DNA of 64,000 nt from Rebecca billardiae RCC1528 (GCA_965240325.2 OZ251234.1:1922001-1986000), one strand, 5' to 3'; positions 3,417-56,300 are shown, numbered from the stretch's first letter. The notes: generated by a model not told the origin, from the letters alone. Made by a program: numbers and translations.

Positions 3417-6407
3417 ATGGAGCAGCCAATGGACCCGCTCGAGCGCTTCCTCGCCCGCTTCGATCCGCTCGGCTCGCCGCCGACGCACCACGACGCGTGC
3501 GGCGGCGGGACCGTGCCCAGCGGCAGCGGCGCGAGCACGCCGCCGCAGCCGCCGAGCGCATGCACAGGCGGCGCCGCCAGCACCAACGGCAGCATCAGCC
3601 CATATCGGACCCCTGCTCGCCTAACGGATGTCGTTCACGACCTCGCCTCGCGCAGACAATCGCACGCGCAGCCGCAGCACGGCACGCCGCCGCATGCCAG
3701 CGGCGGCGTTCTCCTGCGCACGCCGTCTGCGGCGGGCTCGACGGGCGGCGAGAGCATGGGCGGGAGCGGCGGCTACCCGCACGGTTACGCGCCGCACGGC
3801 TACCCGCACAGCGCGGGCGGCGGCTCGCGCAACCTCTCGCCCTCCGCCTCGTCGGTCGGGCGGCACAGCACGGCGAGCGAGCCAATCCGCTCGCTGCTCA
3901 AGGAGGCGGTGGGCCCGTCGCTCTCGGGCGTGTTCGGCCGCGCGGCGACGCTCACGGTGGCGGCGGGGAGCGCGGCCAAGTCGGCCACCACCAAGGTCGT
4001 CTCCGCCGCGCGCGACCACGCCGCCGCCGCCTCGGCCGAGCGCACGGAGACGCAGGTGAAGCGCGCGATGCACGTCAACGCCGCGCACGTGATCACCTCA
4101 GACTACGTCGCGCTCACCGGCCCGCTCGAGAACGGCGTGCTGCTCACCGACCGCTCGGACCGGCGACTCAAGCTGTTCAAGTCGCTCGCGCACCTTGAGC
4201 CGGGGCACACCTACCTCACCGAGTTCGGCAACACGCTCGAGCGCACGCACGCGCACGTCGCGGTGCTCGGCGGCTCGATCGAGATTGCAATCTCGCCGAG
4301 CGCCGAGTACGACTTCGACGCGGCGCAGGCGGCGGCGCAGGCGGCGAAGGCGGCGAAGGCGATGGCCGAGGCGGCCGGGTCGCCGCCTGCGCTCACGCCC
4401 ACGGGCGGCAGCGCGGTGAGGCGACACTCGCCCCTCGCTGCCGACGCGAATAGCGCGAGCCCAGCGCGGGCGTACACCAGCCCGGCGGCGGCGGCGGCGG
4501 TCGCGACGACTGCCGCCGGCGCGCAGTGCGGCGCGGGGCCACCGAGCGGCTGCCCGATTCCAGGCAGCGCCAGTGGTGGGAGCGACTCGGGCGGGAAGCC
4601 GACGATTGGCGCTCGGCTCGCAGCCTACGAAGACTTCGCCGCGCAGAGACACCCGGTGGATCCGGGCAGCCTCGCGCGCCCACCTCCGCGCTCGGCGGCC
4701 GCCGCGCCGACCGCCGCCGCCGCCGGTACTGTCACACGGCTGCCAGCATGCGCGGCGGCCGCAGCGCCCGCGCCGCCAACATCGGCCGCGGCGGCGTTAG
4801 CGGTGGTCGCCGCCCCGACGCCGCGTGCGCAGGCGCCCGCCGTGGACGCGCAGCCTGCGCCTTCCCCACCGCCGCAACCTCCGCAGCCAGCGACCGCCCT
4901 GGTAGCTCACACGGCTGCGGCGCCGGCCGCGGTGGCCTCGCCGCCCGTGCCGCCGCCGCGCGCGTCGCCACCGCCCGCGGCGGCGCAAGCGGCTGGGCCG
5001 CAGCCGGCGCAGGAGCCGGCTTTGGCGACGCCGGCACCACCGCCAGCGCCCGTGCCTCAGCTGCCGGTGCCACTGTCGCCGCCGCAGCCGCCGCCAGTGC
5101 CCTTGTCGGATGAGGGTCCGGTGCCCGCCTGCTCGGCGGCTGCGGCGGCGCCACAGCCGCCGCCCACACAGCCGCAGCCGCAGGCACAGACGCAGACGCC
5201 GCTGCAGCCGCAGCCGCAGTCAAAGCCGCAGCCGCAGCCGCAGCCGCAGCCGCAGCCGCAGTCGCAGCCGCAGCCGCAGCCGCAGCCGCAGCCGCAGCCG
5301 CAGCCGCAGCCGCAGCCGCAGCCGCAGCCGCAGCCGCAGCCGCAGCCGCAGCCGCAGCCGCAGCCGCAGCCGCAGCCGCAGCCGCAGCCGCAGCCGCAGC
5401 CGCAGCCGCAGCCGCAGCCGCAGCCGCAGCCGCAGCCGCAGCCGCAGCCGCAGCCGCAGCCGCAGCCGCAACCGCAGCCGCAGCCGCAGCCGCAGCCGCA
5501 GCCGCAGCCGCAGCCGCAGCCGCAGCCGCAGCCGCAGCCGCAGCCGCAGCCGCAGCCGCAGCCGCAGCCGCAGCCGCAGCCGCAGCCGCAGCCGCAGCCG
5601 CAAATGCAGCAGCAGCAGCAGCAGCCGCCGCAACCGCCGCCGCCGCCGCCGCGGGCCGCCTCGATCGTGCTTGCGCAAGCCAAGGAGGGCGAGACCGTCG
5701 AAACCGTCGTCTCGGCGGCGGCTGCGTGGCTGGGGCGTGCGTGCGGGGGGCAGAGGGCCACCGAGCAGTCGCGCGCGCCGACCAGTGGGACCACCAGCCC
5801 GCCACCGCACGGCGGCGCGCACGCGGCACAGGTGAACGGCGGCGGCGCGAGCGAGGTGGTGGCGGCGAAGCTCGCGCGCGCGGACGACGCCAACGGCTCA
5901 GCGCGAGAGCACACGCCGCCCGCGGTGCGAGTGGAGGACCACACGCGCGCGGGCAGCACCTCCGCTCCGAGCGACGACGGCGCCTCGTGCGACGACGTCC
6001 GCGCGTCCGCGAGCGCGCCGCAGCTGCAGCACCCGGCTGCTTCGCCCTCACCGCCGCCGCCGCCGCCGCTTCCGGCAGAGAGCGGCCCGCCGGCCCCGCC
6101 GGACGAGAGCGTGGCGCGCGCGGCCGAGCTGCTCGCCGCCGCCGAGGCGCGGCGCGGCGCGCTGGAGCAGGAGCGCGTGCGCAAGCTGGGGGCACTCGAG
6201 GAGCGGCTGGCGGACGTGGACGGCTGGAAGGCCACGTGCGCGGCGGACGCGACGCGCGAGCGGCACATGCGCGAGCAGATGGCGCAGCGGCTCGGCCTGC
6301 TGGAGGAGCGCTTCGTCACGACCGAGTCGATGCTCCACCTGCTCCGGCGCGAGAACGAAGACCTCAAGCGGAGGCTGCAGGCGGCCGTGGACGCGGGCTT
6401 CGTGTGA
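3417..6407 (+). CDS. Pro/Ala-rich hypothetical protein with a long (Gln-Pro)n tract and C-terminal coiled coil
   Basis: Long ORF, likely start MEQPMDPLERF at 3417. Globular-looking segment at about 4050-4320. Heptad-like C-terminus (LEERLAD...LRRENEDLKRRL). Confidence 0.65.
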   Translation: MEQPMDPLERFLARFDPLGSPPTHHDACGGGTVPSGSGASTPPQPPSACTGGAASTNGSISPYRTPARLTDVVHDLASRRQSHAQPQHGTPPHASGGVLLRTPSAAGSTGGESMGGSGGYPHGYAPHGYPHSAGGGSRNLSPSASSVGRHSTASEPIRSLLKEAVGPSLSGVFGRAATLTVAAGSAAKSATTKVVSAARDHAAAASAERTETQVKRAMHVNAAHVITSDYVALTGPLENGVLLTDRSDRRLKLFKSLAHLEPGHTYLTEFGNTLERTHAHVAVLGGSIEIAISPSAEYDFDAAQAAAQAAKAAKAMAEAAGSPPALTPTGGSAVRRHSPLAADANSASPARAYTSPAAAAAVATTAAGAQCGAGPPSGCPIPGSASGGSDSGGKPTIGARLAAYEDFAAQRHPVDPGSLARPPPRSAAAAPTAAAAGTVTRLPACAAAAAPAPPTSAAAALAVVAAPTPRAQAPAVDAQPAPSPPPQPPQPATALVAHTAAAPAAVASPPVPPPRASPPPAAAQAAGPQPAQEPALATPAPPPAPVPQLPVPLSPPQPPPVPLSDEGPVPACSAAAAAPQPPPTQPQPQAQTQTPLQPQPQSKPQPQPQPQPQPQSQPQPQPQPQPQPQPQPQPQPQPQPQPQPQPQPQPQPQPQPQPQPQPQPQPQPQPQPQPQPQPQPQPQPQPQPQPQPQPQPQPQPQPQPQPQPQPQPQPQPQPQPQPQPQPQPQMQQQQQQPPQPPPPPPRAASIVLAQAKEGETVETVVSAAAAWLGRACGGQRATEQSRAPTSGTTSPPPHGGAHAAQVNGGGASEVVAAKLARADDANGSAREHTPPAVRVEDHTRAGSTSAPSDDGASCDDVRASASAPQLQHPAASPSPPPPPPLPAESGPPAPPDESVARAAELLAAAEARRGALEQERVRKLGALEERLADVDGWKATCAADATRERHMREQMAQRLGLLEERFVTTESMLHLLRRENEDLKRRLQAAVDAGFV
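5205..5600 (+). repeat. Coding hexanucleotide repeat (CAGCCG)n, about 66 units
   Basis: Near-perfect CAGCCG array read directly; translates as QP repeats. Confidence 0.95.
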
Positions 6408-23121: not shown

Positions 23122-24899
23122 CTAGCGCCGCGGGCGCATGTGCTTGCCCGGCGGTCGGCGGCGCACGATCATGCAGTTGGACCACTTCTTGGGCTTGCGC
23201 GTCTTGTACCCACCCTTGGTCGGCAGCCCCCACGGAGTCACGCCCGGCCGGCCGCCAGAGGTCTTGCCGTTGCCTGCGCGCCCAGGGGCGGGGAGCAGGC
23301 GCGGTGTCACGGGAGCGCTCGCGCGGGTCCCGGGGACGGCCCCTCGGCCACGCAGGCGCGCGCGCGCAGCGAGCCGTGCGTCCCGTCCCCACCGCGCTGC
23401 CTCTGCGCGCCATCCCACCCGCCGCCGCCCGTGCCAGCCAGCCGCCCGGAGGATCAGAAAGAGAGTTGTATAAATCATCGCGACACTCCTGAACACGGAC
23501 CAAGATGTTTATCCACATTTCCTCCGGCTGCTGCGGCGTGGCGAAGGGCGCGCGCCCGCCTCCCCTCCCGCCCGCCCGCCCGGCCGACGCGCGCGCGGGG
23601 AGTGCTGCGTGCTGTGCGCCCCATATCTATCCGGCGGCACAGCCTCGAGGCCGGCCGGTCGCGTGAAGGCGCGCCGGAGCGGCCGGTGGCGCGCCCCGGC
23701 TGCTGGCTGTGCGGACGCTTACGCGCCCCAGCCCTGGGCGCTCGGAGAGCCGGGGCGGGAGTGGGCGGTGCGCGGTGTGCGCACGCCCCCGTCCATGCGT
23801 GCGACGCGCCGCCTCCCCCGCCACCACCCCGTGCACCCGCGCGCCCGGTGCAGCACGCCTGGCGTGGGAGTGGGGGGCTCCGCCCCGCGCGGCCTCGCGC
23901 GGCGGCGCGCGGCAGCGTAGCGCGGCGCGAGGTGGGCCCGGGGCGCGCGGCGCGCGCGCGCGCGCACGCACCGCCTCCGTGCGGGTGGTCGACCGGGTTC
24001 ATCGCCACGCCGCGGACATGGGGCCTTCGGCCGATCCACCTCGCTGCGCCCGCCTTGCCCAGCTTGCGATGCTTGTGCACCGGGTTCGACACGCGGCCGA
24101 TCGTCGCCCTGCAGCTCGAGAGCACGCGCCTCTGCTCGCCGGACGGCAGCCGCAGCAATGAGTAGCGGCCGTTCTCCTCGTGCGCGATGACGGAGGCGGA
24201 GGTGCCCGCGCCGCGGACGAGCTGGCCGCCGCGGCCGGGGTACAGCTCGATGTTGTGCACCGCCACGCCCGTCGGCATCTGCGCCAGCGGCAGCGAGTTC
24301 CCCGGCGCGATGTCGGTGCGATCGGGGTCGCAGCTCGCGATGATCGTCTGCCCGACGGTGAGCGCGTCCGGCGCGAGGATGTACGACGGCGTGAGGTCGG
24401 GGTAGCGCACGAGGGCGATGAAGCTCGAGCGGTTCGGGTCGTACTCCAGCCGCTCGACCGTCGCCGGCTCGTCCAGCCGATCGCGCTTGAAGTCGATCAG
24501 CCGGTATTTGCGCTTGTTGCCGCCGCCGCGGTGCCACGTGCAGATGCGCCCATAGTTGTTGCGCCCGCCCGACTTGACGAGGCCGACGGTGAGCGACTTA
24601 AGCGGCGCGCCCTTCCACAGGTGCGACTTGTCGACCGTCACCCTGTGCCTCCGGCCCGGGGTGATCGGCTTGTACCGCTTCAACCCGTCGTACCCGCGCG
24701 GCCGCTGCTCGACTTGTCGGAGCGGCGCGATCGACGGCACGATGGAGCCCGGCGCGGCGGCGCTCGACTCGGTGGAGAGCCAGCGGGCGCGTGGGGCCGG
24801 CGGGCCGGCGGGCGCGCGCGAGCGCGGCGCTGCCGACGCGACCGCGCCGCGGGCGAGCCCCACAGGGCGCGCCAAGGCGAGCCTCGCCGCGCCCCACAT
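23122..24899 (-). CDS. MRPL2: Mitochondrial ribosomal protein uL2m (2 exons; intron 23274-23971)
   Basis: [43 protein letters not shown]|[15 protein letters not shown]. Arg/Ala/Ser-rich presequence. The GT...CAG intron restores the frame. Confidence 0.93.
23446..23527 (-). ncRNA. Putative intronic box C/D snoRNA with two LSU rRNA guides (U18-like and U26/U81-like)
   Basis: 8-bp terminal stem CCGGAGGA/TCCTCCGG. Terminal D box CTGA and C'-like CGATGAT. Guides CTTGGTCCGTGTT and AACTCTCTTT are complementary to conserved LSU rRNA AACACGGACCAAG and AAAGAGAGTT. AT-rich island in a GC-rich intron. C and D' boxes are degenerate. Confidence 0.72.
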
Positions 24900-25043
24900 C
24901 AAGCTCGCCAGCGCCGCAAGCAATCGCGGGCTCGTGCCGCACTCTCGTCCGGACGACCGCCGATCGCTCGTCCGGACTGGGCTGACGTCGGGTCGTCGTT
25001 TGCACTCGATCGATTTCAAACACGCGTGGCGGGACGCGGGACG

Positions 25044-26168
25044 ATGACGCCTGGCGAGGCGGAGGCTCTTGGGGCCGACGGAGAGCCCGTCGCCACGCTC
25101 GCCTCGCTCGATGACGCTCTGATCAGTACCATCGCCACCTTCATGCGCCCGGAGGCGATCGCGCACGTGGCGGCGTGCTCGAAGCCGCTCAGACGCGTGT
25201 GCGCTGACGATGCTCTGTGGAGCGGCCTGCTCGAGCGCCACTTTGGGGCGGGCGCTGCCGCGGGCGCGGGGCAGATGGGCGCGCGGCTCGCGTTCGGCCG
25301 CGCCGTCGTCCTTCGCCGCTGGCACCTCGACGCGCGCACCCCCGCCGCCGACGCGGACACGCCGTCGACGCCCGAGAATCGTGCGGTCAACTTGCTCACG
25401 CGGCGCGTGCAGGCCATGCGCATGTCCCTCACGCCGGACGAGCGGAAGGCGCTGCGCCACCTCGACCTGAACATGGACGTGTGCTCGCCATCGCCGGCGA
25501 GGCCTCTGCGCGACGCCTCCTTCGACCACATCCTCCGCAAGCGCCTCGCGCGCGACCTGTTCGAGCTGGTCACGCGCCCCGCCGATGGTCTGACCGCCTT
25601 CCCGGCTTCGGAGGACATGCTGGAGTGGCACGCGACGGTGCCGGGGCGGGCGGGGTACGCGGACGAGGGGCGCACGTTCCAACTCGTCCTCCTCTTCGGC
25701 GCCGCCGCCGTGCGCGACGGCGGCGCCGCCTCCGGCGCGGAGGGCGCGGCGCTGCTGCCGCGCGTGCGCGTCGTGCACCCCGTCGCCCTCAGCCACGCCA
25801 ACGTGGCGCCCGACGGGCGCGTGTGCGAGGAGGCGCTGCGCTGCCGCTGCCGCGCGACGGACTCGGTGCGCGCGATCCTGCTGCGCGTGCAGCGGCTGCT
25901 CGACACGCCCCACTTCGGCGTGCCGCCTCTCAACGAGGACGCCACACTCGCCTGGCTCGAGGCCAGCGGGCGCGTCTCGATCGTCCCGGCGGCCGCAGCG
26001 CCGGCGGACGCGCCGGGCGCGCGCGAGCCGGGCAAGGGCGGCGGCGGTGCGGACGCCGTAATGGCAGGGCTCGACGCAGGCGGCGCTGGCGGGGTGTTGC
26101 GCGCGTCCAGGGGGAGCGGCGGGCTTGGCGGTAGCCCGTCGCTCCTGTACCGCCAGCCCACGGCTTGA
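25044..26168 (+). CDS. F-box-like / ubiquitin-conjugating (E2, UBC) domain fusion protein
   Basis: F-box-like LASLDDALISTIATFM...VAACSKPLRRVCADDALW. UBC: RKRLARDL...MLEWHATV...PRVRVV...SHANVAPDGRVC...ILLRVQRLLDTP...PLN. Confidence 0.78.
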   Translation: MTPGEAEALGADGEPVATLASLDDALISTIATFMRPEAIAHVAACSKPLRRVCADDALWSGLLERHFGAGAAAGAGQMGARLAFGRAVVLRRWHLDARTPAADADTPSTPENRAVNLLTRRVQAMRMSLTPDERKALRHLDLNMDVCSPSPARPLRDASFDHILRKRLARDLFELVTRPADGLTAFPASEDMLEWHATVPGRAGYADEGRTFQLVLLFGAAAVRDGGAASGAEGAALLPRVRVVHPVALSHANVAPDGRVCEEALRCRCRATDSVRAILLRVQRLLDTPHFGVPPLNEDATLAWLEASGRVSIVPAAAAPADAPGAREPGKGGGGADAVMAGLDAGGAGGVLRASRGSGGLGGSPSLLYRQPTA

Positions 26169-50822: not shown

Positions 50823-53365
50823 TTACCGATTTTGGGCAACTGAAAACATGAAACTGCACTTTTTTGAAAAACGCACTTCAAAAAGTTTCATCTTTTGAAA
50901 ACCGGATTTAAAACATGTTTTGTTTTGTTTTTGGAAAACAAGTTTTGCCAAAACGAAACAAAACATGAAAACGTTTTTCAAAACCTGTTTTCAAAACGTG
51001 TTTTCAAAAAGTGCAAACCTGTTTTCTCTTTTTCAAAAACGTTTTCACTTTTTGTCTTCTTCCAAAAAGTGACGCTCGAAAACACACGGTGAACAGAATG
51101 GCGGCCAAATGTCTACTTCACGGTGGCCGCCGCGCGACGCGGGCCGGCGGCCTAGTAAGAACCCTGAGCCGGCGCGGACGGGCACTGGCAGGTGCGCAAC
51201 CACCCAATACATGCTCCAGACACCGCTCACCAGCCCCTGCCACTGCGTCTCCTCGTCTATTACTGCCCGCGACACGCGCGAATGTCATCTCAATCGCGGC
51301 TGCGTCGCGCGACCGCGCGTCCGCGCGCGCATGCGGTGCGCAGGCGTCAGATGGCGGAGGTGGAGATGCGGTGCGACGCGCATGGACGATCTCGCGCAGA
51401 CGCACCTCGCTCGCAGGCCCGCTGCCACTGGATGCGCCCGGCTGCACCGTCCGTTTGCTGCGCGCAGTCGCAGCCGGCCGTTCTTGTCAACGGTGTTGGT
51501 GCGCTTCTTCATGATCTTGCCCACGATCACCTGCTTGGCGGCCTGCTCGACGCGGCCAGCTCGCGGCATGCTCGTGCCGCGTCTGTTCGAGCTCAGCCCG
51601 CCCGCCCGGCACGTGCGGTCGCGGAACGTGTTGCCGATGATCTTGCCGTCGTGCTCCGACGCTTGTGTGCTCGCGCGGTGCAGCGCGCCGCCGAGTCGCA
51701 CGATGGCGCGAAGGGCGATGGCGACGACCACGTGCGGGTAGCACGCGACCGTGCTCGTCCACCGCTTGAGCTCACGCACATACGCGCACCTGGCGTTGAG
51801 CGCAGCAAGCACCATCACCTTCACCTCCGCGGCGGTCGTCGGACGCCGCCGACGAGTTCGCGCACCGCCGCCAACCACAGCCGGCAGAAGTCCTCACGCG
51901 TGAGCTGCGGCTGCTGCGGTGCCTGAGCAGCGTTGGCGTAGCCCTCGCACGGCACGTTGGCGTCACGCGCGTGCTGCATCCTCTGCTGCCCGCCGTCACC
52001 GGCGTGGCCCTGGCGGTACCTGGCCGCACGCGGCGCGCACTACGACCTCGTCGTGTCCGCCGACTTTGCGTCTGCCGACGGCTCGGTCCACACTGATCGT
52101 CAGCCCTGGGCTCCGCGGGGCCCCGTGCAGCGCCACTGCTGTGCGACGATCGCATCGATATGACTCACAGCGACTCACGCGTACTTGTGTCGTAGTAGCA
52201 GTATGGCAGCGTCATGCAGGGCATCAGACGACTGATAATGACGCTGAGGGCTCCTGCCCGAAGCGCACGGGCCCGCGGAGGGATGAAAGTCGAAAGACAT
52301 GATGATGATGATGATGAGTGAATTGAGTGATGATCGGCTCGCGTCCGGACGCGCGCATCATCACGCTGCTCGTCGCGCCCAGATTCCGCTGCTCGCCATG
52401 ATGACGAACGAAGCACGGACTCCTGCAGGCCGATGTGCTCAGCGGCGCGCTTACTGCGTCGGCGACAGGATCCTCCATCAGCTCCCGCCCCTGGCCCTGT
52501 CGCAGCAGGGCACGGCTGAGGGTCACACCCGCTGATGGCCGGGCGAGACCAAGCATCAAGCGCGCACGCATGCGCGGTCGCCGCGGCGCACTTGCGCGCA
52601 CCACCGGAACCTCAACGGTCTTCTTGCGCGTCATGCGGATGACCTGCATTGCCCTGCAGACGGTCGGCTCGCTGACGCTCAGGCCATACCACAGCGCAAG
52701 GCGTGCACACGTTTGGGCCAGCGTGTCTCGCGAGTACATCGTGACGAGTGCTTTCAGCAGGAAGAGCTGGGGCAGGTCAAAGATCGGCGGGCCAGAGGAC
52801 GCGACGCCACCCGACTGCGTGCTCACGATCTGCTGCGTCGCGAGGTACTCCCGCACCCACTTGAACACGGTCGATTTGGCGACGCCCGTGAGTCGAGCGA
52901 TCTCGTCGTACGTGCACGACGAGTTGCCCGCGCGCAGTCGGAGGGCAGTCCCCACGACGCGCTGCCGAAGGCACACGTCGTAGCTCCTACCCTGTCGGTA
53001 CACGCCGTTGTGCGCGTTGACTGCGATCCGCGGCCGTGGCTCGCGCGGCATCTCCTGTCGCCGCCGATGCCCGCCGCCGCGCGACGCGGTGGGCAACGGT
53101 CTTTCTTTCCTCTCCAAGAAAACTTTCAAAACAAAACCTGAAACACGTTTTGAAAACTTAAGTTTTGTTTTGTTTTTTTGAAACACGTTTTGAAAACTTG
53201 TTTTCAAAACGTGTTTCAAAAAAACAAAACAAAACAAGTTTTTCGAAAACATGTTTTCAAAAAGATTTTTTTCCAAAACATGTTTTAAAAAATGAAAAAA
53301 GTTCAAAAAACAAAACAAAACTTGCAAAAACGAAATGCATGTTTTCAGTTGCCCAAAATCGGTAA
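50823..53365 (-). mobile_element. Non-autonomous IS630/Tc1-mariner-type DNA transposon inserted in (TA)n
   Basis: Perfect 28-bp TIR TTACCGATTTTGGGCAACTGAAAACATG. TA flanks. About 250-bp AT-rich subterminal repeat arrays. Internal transposase N-terminus. Confidence 0.88.
52600..53051 (-). pseudogene. Transposase N-terminal DNA-binding part (paired-like HTH + winged helix); no DDE domain seen
   Basis: GVYRQGRSY...LRQRVV, TYDEIARLTGVAKSTVFKWVREY, VSEPTVCRAMQVIRMTRKK. Confidence 0.75.
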
Positions 53366-53391: not shown

Positions 53392-56300
53392 CGCTGCGTT
53401 TTTCCACGGGCCGGTCCGCCAGACCGCGAAACAATTCACGCATTTTCAGAGCGAGTCGCGGCTCCGCCTTCCCATTGGTCGGTTGGGGGGGGATCGAAAA
53501 ATGAGCGGTCGCCAAAGTGAGACATATTATCTCAATACCATCAGGCGAAAGACTGGAATCAGGAAGAAAACGAGCCAATGGTCGTCCCGGAAGGCATGAT
53601 GGCTTGGCCGCAATCTCCTTAGCATCTCAGCAATCTTCGCTCCTTTTTTGTGTCCTTCTCCACCCTCCACGAGGCCTGGACGAGATCGCTTGCGAGCGGA
53701 AGGGCTTCGGGTCGAGACTCGAGTAGAGCGCGTCAAAGCGAGGGAGCCGCTGGCTCGCTGGCTCCGTGAGGTTCAAGGCAGCTAGCCGCCGACGCTGATG
53801 GCGAAGACGGCGGCTGGCCAAGGGCCGTAAGGGCACCCAACTCCCAGTGCGGCCAGCTCGGAGGTTGAGGTGCCTCTGTCTGTCTCGTGGCCTCGCGACT
53901 CGCGTCCGGCCGGCGTGCTTCAAACGCTGCGCGAGGGCGCGACGTCGAGCGCTCTGCCTGGATGACTGGCGGCGATGCCGAACCCGGACGGCTCGCCGCT
54001 GAGCGGCGCGGGTCAAGGCTCTCCTGACACGCGCGTGAGTCCGCCAGGCTCGCCTCTTTCGCCTCTCGGCCCGTGCAATCGGCAGTTGCCAACGCGGCGC
54101 GCGAGCTCACTCGTGCCGTGCGCGCCAGCAGCAAACGGAGCGCTCGGGCTGCTTGCACCGGGCACGCAGGGGCAAGCGTGGGCGCCCGCCCGCACTTTGG
54201 CTTGTAGGCCCCTACGGGCAGCCTCCATGTCCGCCTGACTCACTTCCGTTCCCGGCGGTCGGCTGCTCGACTCGTCGCGCGTCCGGTGGCCTCAGCCGAG
54301 CTGCGCTCGGCTCGCCCCCACCTCCGCCTCCACCTCCGCCTCGCCATCAGCACTGTCCGCCTCGCCCGCCGCGCGCCGCCCGCCGCGCGCCGCCCGCCGC
54401 GGCGCCCCGTCATGCCCGCACCCTCGCCTCCCGCGTCTTCGGCGACGGGCCACTCACCGCGGGCACTCACGGCGGCGAGCACAACAGAGGCGCCCCAACC
54501 TCCGCACTGGGAGTTGGGTGCCCTTACGGCCCTTGGGCTGGCGATGGTCGCAACTCAAGTGGGATTGGGGATTGGAAGATGGGCTGAAAGACCAGGCATC
54601 GTATTCAACTCCAGCCGACCAACACTGCAGCTCTGTGATGCGGGCCCGGCCACTGGTCTGTACACGGCAGGCCCCGGGCTTGCGTCGCGCCGCAGGTTGG
54701 GGTCGCCGGCCTTCCTATAGGCGCTCACCACGGCTCTTGCGACGGTGACGGTGACATGGATGAAGACGATGGCGACGCCTTTCACGACGCTGCCTCTGCG
54801 TGGCCAGACTCGCTGCGCAGTCGATCGGCCGGATGCACATCAAAAGGGTGGTGGCGGGCCGGTCCGCGGCGGGCAAGCTCATCATGTCGTTAGGGCCTGG
54901 CGTCCGCGGCATGTGCCGTTTTCACCTCCCGCAGGTCGCATTTGAGCTGATGGAGTTATGCGGCGACGTCCTCAAGACCGGGCCAGAGGATCACAGCGTG
55001 GAGTGCAACGCTTGTTCTGCCGGGCGGTGAGCCGCGCGTGTTGATTCGCCGCGAATGATCGCTCGGCGACGACGACTACCGGTCGTCGACTATACGGGAT
55101 TAACGGCCGCGTACGTACTGCTATAATAACGGCGGTATAACTATCGGACCGTGTAGTAGTACCGGCGGGCCGTGGCGCGCCGCCGAGTCGTGCCGATTCC
55201 AGGACGTTATTCCGCCTATTCGTTCCGACGACTCATCCGACGTCGGGCCCGCGCGCGCATGTTAGCCCGTTATTATTACTCGTCGTTGTTCACCTACTTC
55301 CTGAATTCCTCATCCCGATCCGAGTCCGACTCAGAAGTCAGTGTCAGATCCGGGCGCTGCGCCATCAGTGCGGGCGGCGTCACCACTTCTGTCGCCGCCG
55401 GCGGAACGTCTCCGCCGCCGGTCGGACCGGCGCTAGAAGTCGTAGCAGATGAATTACTGGCGCTATTATTGCTAGATCCGAGTATCCGTGACCGTCAGAC
55501 GGTGATGCGGCACCGTGTCCCGTGATGCGGGACATGAGTCTGGTCCGGCGGCGGCACTCGCCAATCGCGATAGTTCGACACGCGGTGACTGCATGCTCTG
55601 ATGATGATCGTCATCTGTATATTGAGTGACTGGCGGGCAGCAGAGTGACGACGACGCCCACCGCGCTGTCGTCCGTCTAGTGCCAAGCTCCCAAGAGTCA
55701 TCGTCGCGGGCCTTTGACGCGGGGCGCCGTGCGCACCGGCGCTGCAATAACTCGCCAACTCGGCATCGTCACGAGTCTGCACGGGCCTCGGCCGATTTGG
55801 TGAACCCAGCGGCGTGCACTGCCGCGAGCGTGCTGCCCGGGCTGACCTTGGATTCGATGCCAGAGTGATAAGACATGACAATTCCATAGTCTGTGCTTGC
55901 CCTCCCCACTACCCGCGTACGCCGCGAGTGCCTCCGTACGAGTTCATGGCCGCGTAGAACGGCGCACCGTGCGGCGGGCGACGAGGCCGCACTCGTGAGC
56001 TGCATGCTGCATCCAGGCAACGCCTTGGACGCGTACCTGTGCTTCCTGAGAAGGCGGGCCTCACGCCTGGCTGCGCTGGTGTCGGTGGACGCCCTGAGCT
56101 TCACCGCAGCCAGCCCACCCTGGGCGTCGACAACCTTGTTTACAAACCGTGCCGTGCAGGAGCCCGCTCCCACAAGCTGCTCTCACAGTGAGCCGCAGCT
56201 GGGACATCCATCTGTTCGGCCTCCTCGCTGGGGAGCGTCAGGTCGAGCGCCGGAACTTCCGACTTGCGCGAGCCCAGCAGCCGGCCGAGCGGCGCCCAGC

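Follow-up and report, generated by a model that had tools for sequence, protein, structure and literature searches.

Does the AT-rich island within the single intron of a gene for a mitochondrial ribosomal protein in Rebecca billardiae RCC1528 encode a functional small nucleolar RNA (snoRNA), and which nucleotides of the large-subunit (LSU) rRNA would such an RNA select for methylation? The island lies in a 64,000-nucleotide stretch of DNA that was analysed as a whole and is referred to below as the window. An initial annotation had read it as a box C/D snoRNA, degenerate in its C and D' boxes, that combines a U18-type guide with a guide resembling those of SNORD26 and SNORD81, and had proposed that its placement in an organellar ribosomal protein gene couples the biogenesis of two ribosomes.

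The host gene resides on the minus strand and encodes a protein with Ribosomal_L2_N and L2_C domains. Exon 1 (23972..24899) comprises 309 codons plus the first base of a split codon, and in its product the L2 N and C domains are preceded by an N-terminal extension rich in Arg (Pfam PF00181, 9.5e-31; PF03947, 1.4e-47). The single intron (23274..23971; 698 nt, GT..AG, phase 1) splits the sequence as HPHGG/G NGKTSGG, and exon 2 (23122..23273), which ends in PRR and a stop codon, yields tblastn matches to exon 2 of the corresponding genes of Diacronema lutheri (L017) and of a contig from Logan run SRR30664517 (L018). In protein searches, conducted separately for exons 1 and 2, three eukaryotic matches were followed by alphaproteobacterial L2 proteins, as expected for a nuclear gene of mitochondrial uL2 (uL2m). 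The nearest named relative is from D. lutheri, a haptophyte of the Pavlovophyceae (64% identity), and the position of the intron is shared with L017, L018 and a further contig, L019. A divergently oriented gene upstream of uL2m (24180-26168, plus strand) is 35–61% identical to the neighbours of uL2m in Diacronema and L019, which show weak UQ_con or F-box-like Pfam matches; the head-to-head gene pair is therefore conserved and the loci are orthologous.

The island spans positions 23446..23527 on the minus strand. In DNA form, it starts with CCGGAGGA and ends with CTGA followed by TCCTCCGG; as an RNA, it would read CCGGAGGA-A-AUGUGGA-UAAACA-UCUUGGUCCGUGUU-C-AGGA-GUGUCGCG-AUGAUUU-AUAC-AACUCUCUUU-CUGA-UCCUCCGG, that is, an 82-nt box C/D snoRNA of the U18 type with two guides. 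Its GC content is 47.6%, compared to 83% in the remaining intron and 68% in the window. The 5' arm of the terminal stem (CCGGAGGA; 23520..23527, RNA residues 1–8) pairs perfectly with the 3' arm (UCCUCCGG; 23446..23453, residues 75–82), giving rise to 8 uninterrupted base pairs, and box D (CUGA; 23454..23457, residues 71–74), which can be read directly in the sequence, abuts the 3' arm. The D' guide (UCUUGGUCCGUGUU; 23492..23505, residues 23–36) is followed by box D' (AGGA; 23487..23490, residues 38–41), which Rfam aligns with the CUGA of SNORD18, by box C' (AUGAUUU; 23472..23478, residues 50–56), in which the UGA core is conserved, and by the D guide (AACUCUCUUU; 23458..23467, residues 61–70). 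Both internal boxes are present in degenerate form, which is common for boxes in this position. The fold energy of the island is no better than that of shuffled sequences (z -0.29), as is usual for C/D RNAs and hence uninformative.

Box C (AUGUGGA; 23512..23518, residues 10–16) matches RUGAUGA at five of seven positions, with a U at position 4 in place of the normally invariant A and a G at position 5. The normal A at position 4 takes part in one of the kink-turn's two sheared G-A pairs, and substitutions of it are very rare. AUGUGGA stands in the canonical box C register (stem, then AAU, then G...), in which the G-A at positions 3-4 reads G-U; against CUGA, it would form the pairs G-A, U-G, G-U and G-C, whereas the usual series is G-A, A-G, U-U and G-C. 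An alternative register, GGAUAA, keeps the GA and leaves a 6-nt bulge. The variant is also present in a separately assembled Logan contig (run ERR14847148), which shows no difference over 4311 nt, a stretch that includes the RNA, and is therefore not an artefact of this assembly.

Potential targets were sought in the organism's own LSU rRNA, encoded by rDNA on contig C20 and numbered according to the Rfam LSU match. Copies of the LSU rDNA lie at about 124, 180, 262, 287 and 355 kb on this contig (L001-L004), 25–80 kb apart and one of them inverted, so that the rDNA units look dispersed rather than arranged as one tandem array. Both TTGGTCCGTGTT and AACTCTCTTT-CTGA are present in the island and are complementary to this LSU, over 13 Watson-Crick pairs plus one G-U pair for the D' guide (LSU 692-705) and over 10 Watson-Crick pairs for the D guide (LSU 380-389). 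In the D' register, which follows from the Rfam alignment and is conserved in all homologues (see below), the fifth nucleotide upstream of the box pairs with A695 in AAAC[A]CGG. The fifth nucleotide upstream of box D pairs with A384 in AAAG[A]GAGUU, within the AAGAGAGUU region of the LSU rRNA, making A384 the predicted target of the D guide. The island, its 8-bp stem, the terminal CTGA, the 698-nt uL2m intron and the two guide sequences all stand as initially described.

The D' half of the RNA recalls U18/SNORD18 (RF00093, clan CL00047; yeast snR18; AtU18, RF01159). The two have UGGUCCGUGUU as guide core in common and point to one and the same adenosine, which lies within GAAAC[A]CGGACC in LSU domain II (human Am1313; Am1326 in newer numbering). 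The order of the boxes and the size (about 70–80 nt) agree as well, and U18 is intron-encoded in vertebrates and yeast, as is the RNA described here. Unlike in U18/SNORD18, box C (AUGUGGA) and box D' (AGGA) are degenerate, the D guide hits a second, distant LSU site through a region that aligns weakly with the Rfam SNORD18 consensus, and a gene for a mitochondrial ribosomal protein serves as host. The U18 site is reported as Am1313 in human, Am649 in yeast and A661 in Arabidopsis and as conserved in Dictyostelium, and published surveys describe U18 and its target as shared by plants, fungi, animals and Amoebozoa (PMC3511168, PMC8053127, PMC8817022).

Rfam at its gathering thresholds gave no match in the whole window. 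At relaxed thresholds, SNORD18 aligned with the island over its full length (1-71; 23.8 bits, E 0.033 for 401 nt searched), with stem, C, guide, D', C' and D all in order. The gathering score of 41, a curated operational cut-off derived for the most part from sequences of animals and fungi, was likewise missed by the Diacronema RNA (25.8 bits) and by the metagenome homologues described below (28.5–34.5 bits), all of which align over the full length. SNORD26 produced a weak, partial alignment (14.8 bits, E 2.8) covering the guide and box alone, and SNORD81 produced no match. The Tetrahymena RNA TtnuCD18 (RF02294), a protist C/D RNA with an GUCCGUGUU guide, aligned across its whole model with 20.3 bits, far under its cut-off of 55; the second guide region of that RNA is unrelated.

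DNA searches of the genome found the island as a single copy, and a covariance model built from five homologues scored 81.5 bits at the locus and had no second match in the 72 Mb of the genome. To look for another U18, the eight further copies of TGGTCCGTGTT outside the rDNA were inspected, and none is accompanied by boxes or a stem. A genome-wide SNORD18 search, in which 59 of 2644 candidates were scored and the locus was not among the matches, returned a low-complexity match on C20 that we consider false. Elsewhere in the assembly, a 171-nt stretch of the 95-kb contig C41 (L016, at about 37.5 kb) is very AT-rich, unlike nuclear contigs, and this contig may be an organelle genome.

The uL2m gene of Diacronema lutheri contains an intron of 1798 nt (L017, 4130-5927) at the same phase-1 position after HPHGG, and this intron harbors a SNORD18-like RNA on the coding strand at 5600-5683. 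The two introns are similar only within the RNA; the flanks are unalignable, being a CA-rich microsatellite in Diacronema and GC-rich here. From the 3' end of the RNA to the acceptor site downstream, the distance is 172 nt in the window and 244 nt in Diacronema. The two RNAs agree fully in both guide cores, and the terminal stem, GUGUGGA/UCCACAC in Diacronema compared to CCGGAGGA/UCCUCCGG here, differs in sequence with pairing kept. The Diacronema box C, AUGACGA, is placed opposite a box D that reads CCGA, turning the usual U-U pair into C-C. The stretches of the L017 intron read outside the snoRNA consist largely of a CA/CACGCA microsatellite, with a short CCCTAA telomere-like repeat near 5876-5892. 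Conservation in orthologous introns, which the initial annotation had put forward as a check, was therefore found in Diacronema and not in L018, whose uL2m is 67% identical and whose intron at the same phase-1 position (L018:3854-3935) is only 82 nt long and lacks the snoRNA; the L019 contig stops 165 nt into the shared intron.

A pattern scan of metagenomes for the two guide cores within 15–45 nt of each other returned 23 contigs. Three of these (L022, L025 and L033) carry clear homologues; the others lack boxes and were set aside as chance or unrelated matches. The three metagenome homologues have AUGAUGA or GUGAUGA as box C, CUGA as box D and a D' box in the same column. Across the four homologues other than the window RNA, box C reads AUGACGA, GUGAUGA, AUGAUGA and AUGAUGA, with the A at position 4 kept in all four, and the D' column reads CCGA, CGGA, CUGA and UGGA, with an invariant GA. 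Among all five homologues, UG..GA of box C, an 11-nt core of the D' guide, GA of box D', C.GA of box D and residues T51, G52 and A53 of box C' are invariant. Moreover, RNAalifold found the terminal stem unaided in the five homologues, with compensatory changes in five of the six aligned pairs. The dual-guide architecture read from the window alone is thus borne out by relatives that keep both guides.

The D half of the RNA likewise has a recognizable counterpart. Through AACUCUCUUU-CUGA, it pairs with AAGAGAGUU in LSU domain I, a stretch likewise recognized by human SNORD26, which directs methylation of 28S Am398 (old A389), and SNORD81, which directs that of Am400 (old A391) (PMC11550049). 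The Rfam consensus of SNORD26 places the box two nucleotides further from the shared AACUCUCU than is the case here, and its guide lies upstream of D', two nucleotides out of register; the D guide therefore picks the adenosine two nucleotides downstream of that of SNORD26, namely the one targeted by SNORD81. Indeed, the adenosine of SNORD81 lies opposite the fifth nucleotide upstream of box D. The part of the initial annotation that named a SNORD26/SNORD81-like guide thus holds for the paired region, with a register that is specifically that of SNORD81. Judged from sequence comparison, the likeness to SNORD81 and SNORD26 is one of mechanism and target, not of family membership. These are separate RNAs in human, and carrying two unrelated guides on one RNA is normal for C/D snoRNAs, so that joining guides that are separate in vertebrates is not unusual in itself.

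Could the D' guide alone work, with the match of the D guide to LSU 380-389 being fortuitous or targetless? Ten base pairs, seven of them A-U, are near the lower limit for guiding, and a CTGA preceded by a 10-mer rRNA complement and enclosed by a stem of at least 5 bp arises about 1.4 times per shuffled window and three times in the reversed window. The adenosine equivalent to A384 is also absent from the list of 2'-O-methylated (Nm) sites in Arabidopsis 25S rRNA, the first of which are U44, U48, U144, G399 and A661 (PMC8053127), and from the Dictyostelium LSU list (PMC8817022). Yet the 9-nt core of the D guide, AACUCUCUU, which lies next to box D, is invariant in five of five homologues while the adjacent spacer varies in both sequence and length. 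The other four D guides possess 2–4 additional nucleotides that match the UUAAA adjoining the paired stretch in this genome's LSU, and their pairing would reach 11–14 bp if their own LSU matches the one analysed here; it is only in the window RNA that one U-to-C change limits the guide to 10 bp, and in Diacronema a G rather than a U stands next to box D. Together with a register that coincides with a proven human site, these patterns lead us to regard a single working guide as unlikely.

The chance rates just quoted also bear on how the other features of the island are to be weighed. An AT-richness like that of the island is seen in 6% of 82-nt windows, and the GC-rich window contains about 14 places with a 13-mer complement to rRNA, about twice the naive expectation. 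No single feature of the island is significant alone; it is their conjunction, together with conservation in other species, that carries the case. A second C/D candidate from the scan of the window (53534-53626, minus strand), in which a 10-nt complement to LSU 937-946 (GCGAAAGACU) precedes CTGA and a 7-bp stem flanks the segment, lacks a recognizable box C and an Rfam snoRNA match and was discarded as falling within the chance rate. Nearby, positions 53139-53259 form a long, AT-rich, near-perfect palindrome that attracts dozens of spurious matches to miRNA families.

The variant box C invites a different reading, according to which the island is a U18 orthologue by descent that was recently disabled: the change from AUGA to AUGU would block kink-turn formation and Snu13 binding, the RNA would be degraded together with the intron, and the LSU sites would be unmethylated or guided from elsewhere. 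The deviation does affect the one normally invariant A that all four homologues have kept, and the D guide is three pairs short of those of its homologues. However, no other U18-like locus is found in the 72-Mb genome, while methylation of the U18 target has been reported for all eukaryotes surveyed (PMC3511168, PMC8053127, PMC8817022). In addition, the guide cores, box D, the UGA of C', the GA of D' and the perfect 8-bp stem are all intact, and the persistence of a 48% GC island in an 83% GC intron argues for continuing selection. We therefore think it quite improbable that the copy is a disabled one. That the island is not an RNA gene at all, and instead a patch that is AT-rich by chance, a fragment of a repeat or a regulatory element of the intron, is barely credible: an Rfam score under the cut-off, an unexceptional fold energy and the frequency of AT-rich patches in the window would fit such an origin, but the island is single copy, has a conserved counterpart between unalignable flanks in the corresponding intron of a second genus, shows compensatory changes in its stem and has homologues with canonical boxes.

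With the anatomy of the sequence, its complementarity to the organism's own rRNA, its single copy, its orthology and conservation and the compensatory changes in its stem established, we suggest that the island is, with high probability, a functional, two-guide, single-copy and intron-encoded orthologue of U18/SNORD18. As for other members of its class, splicing would free the uL2m intron that contains the snoRNA. Debranching and trimming by exonucleases would then proceed up to the RNP assembled on the C/D motif and the 8-bp terminal stem. The RNA would assemble with Snu13, Nop56, Nop58 and fibrillarin despite its variant box C, and the resulting RNP would 2'-O-methylate LSU A695 via the D' guide during pre-rRNA maturation. 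Via the D guide, the same RNP would be expected to 2'-O-methylate LSU A384, the equivalent of the position that is methylated by SNORD81 in human.

The proposed coupling of two ribosomes through the host gene fared less well. As described above, the same intron is 82 nt long and carries no RNA in L018, and tblastn detected no homology to uL2 on the contigs of the three homologues whose boxes are canonical (L022, L025 and L033). Among the open reading frames flanking these homologues, Pfam returned a leucine-rich repeat (LRR) on L022 as its sole match. Two of the three are accompanied by snoRNA-like matches a few hundred nucleotides away: a snoR1-like sequence on L025 (1778-1857; 42.1 bits, cut-off 49) and a snoR11-like sequence on L022 (377-443; 26.1 bits). 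In the organisms represented by L022 and L025, the U18-like RNA thus seems to reside in a snoRNA cluster rather than in a uL2m intron. These data give no support to a regulatory link between the biogenesis of mitochondrial ribosomes and that of cytosolic ones.

The island is a routine, previously unannotated snoRNA of the well-known and ancient U18 class. Judged by titles and abstract openings, none of the papers listed by a full-text literature search deals with haptophyte snoRNAs, and the present analysis contributes a checked snoRNA annotation for a lineage that has almost none. It adds the pavlovophyte branch to the deep conservation known for U18 and its target, documents a snoRNA that has been kept in one host intron across at least two genera and provides two predicted methylation sites, LSU A695 and A384.

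Two further implications are tentative. Methylation by the D guide would fall on the SNORD81 position, which in the surveyed rRNA lists is recorded for human and missing from Arabidopsis and Dictyostelium (PMC8053127, PMC8817022). Separately, lineages of the pavlovophyte type may tolerate C/D kink-turns that depart from the usual rules. If the RNAs with AUGUGGA/CUGA and AUGACGA/CCGA are functional, Snu13 binding or kink-turn folding would accept a residue other than A at the second sheared pair, and such tolerance, if true, is perhaps aided by the unusually long terminal stem. The variant box C would in this way represent a natural test of how much deviation a C/D snoRNA can tolerate.
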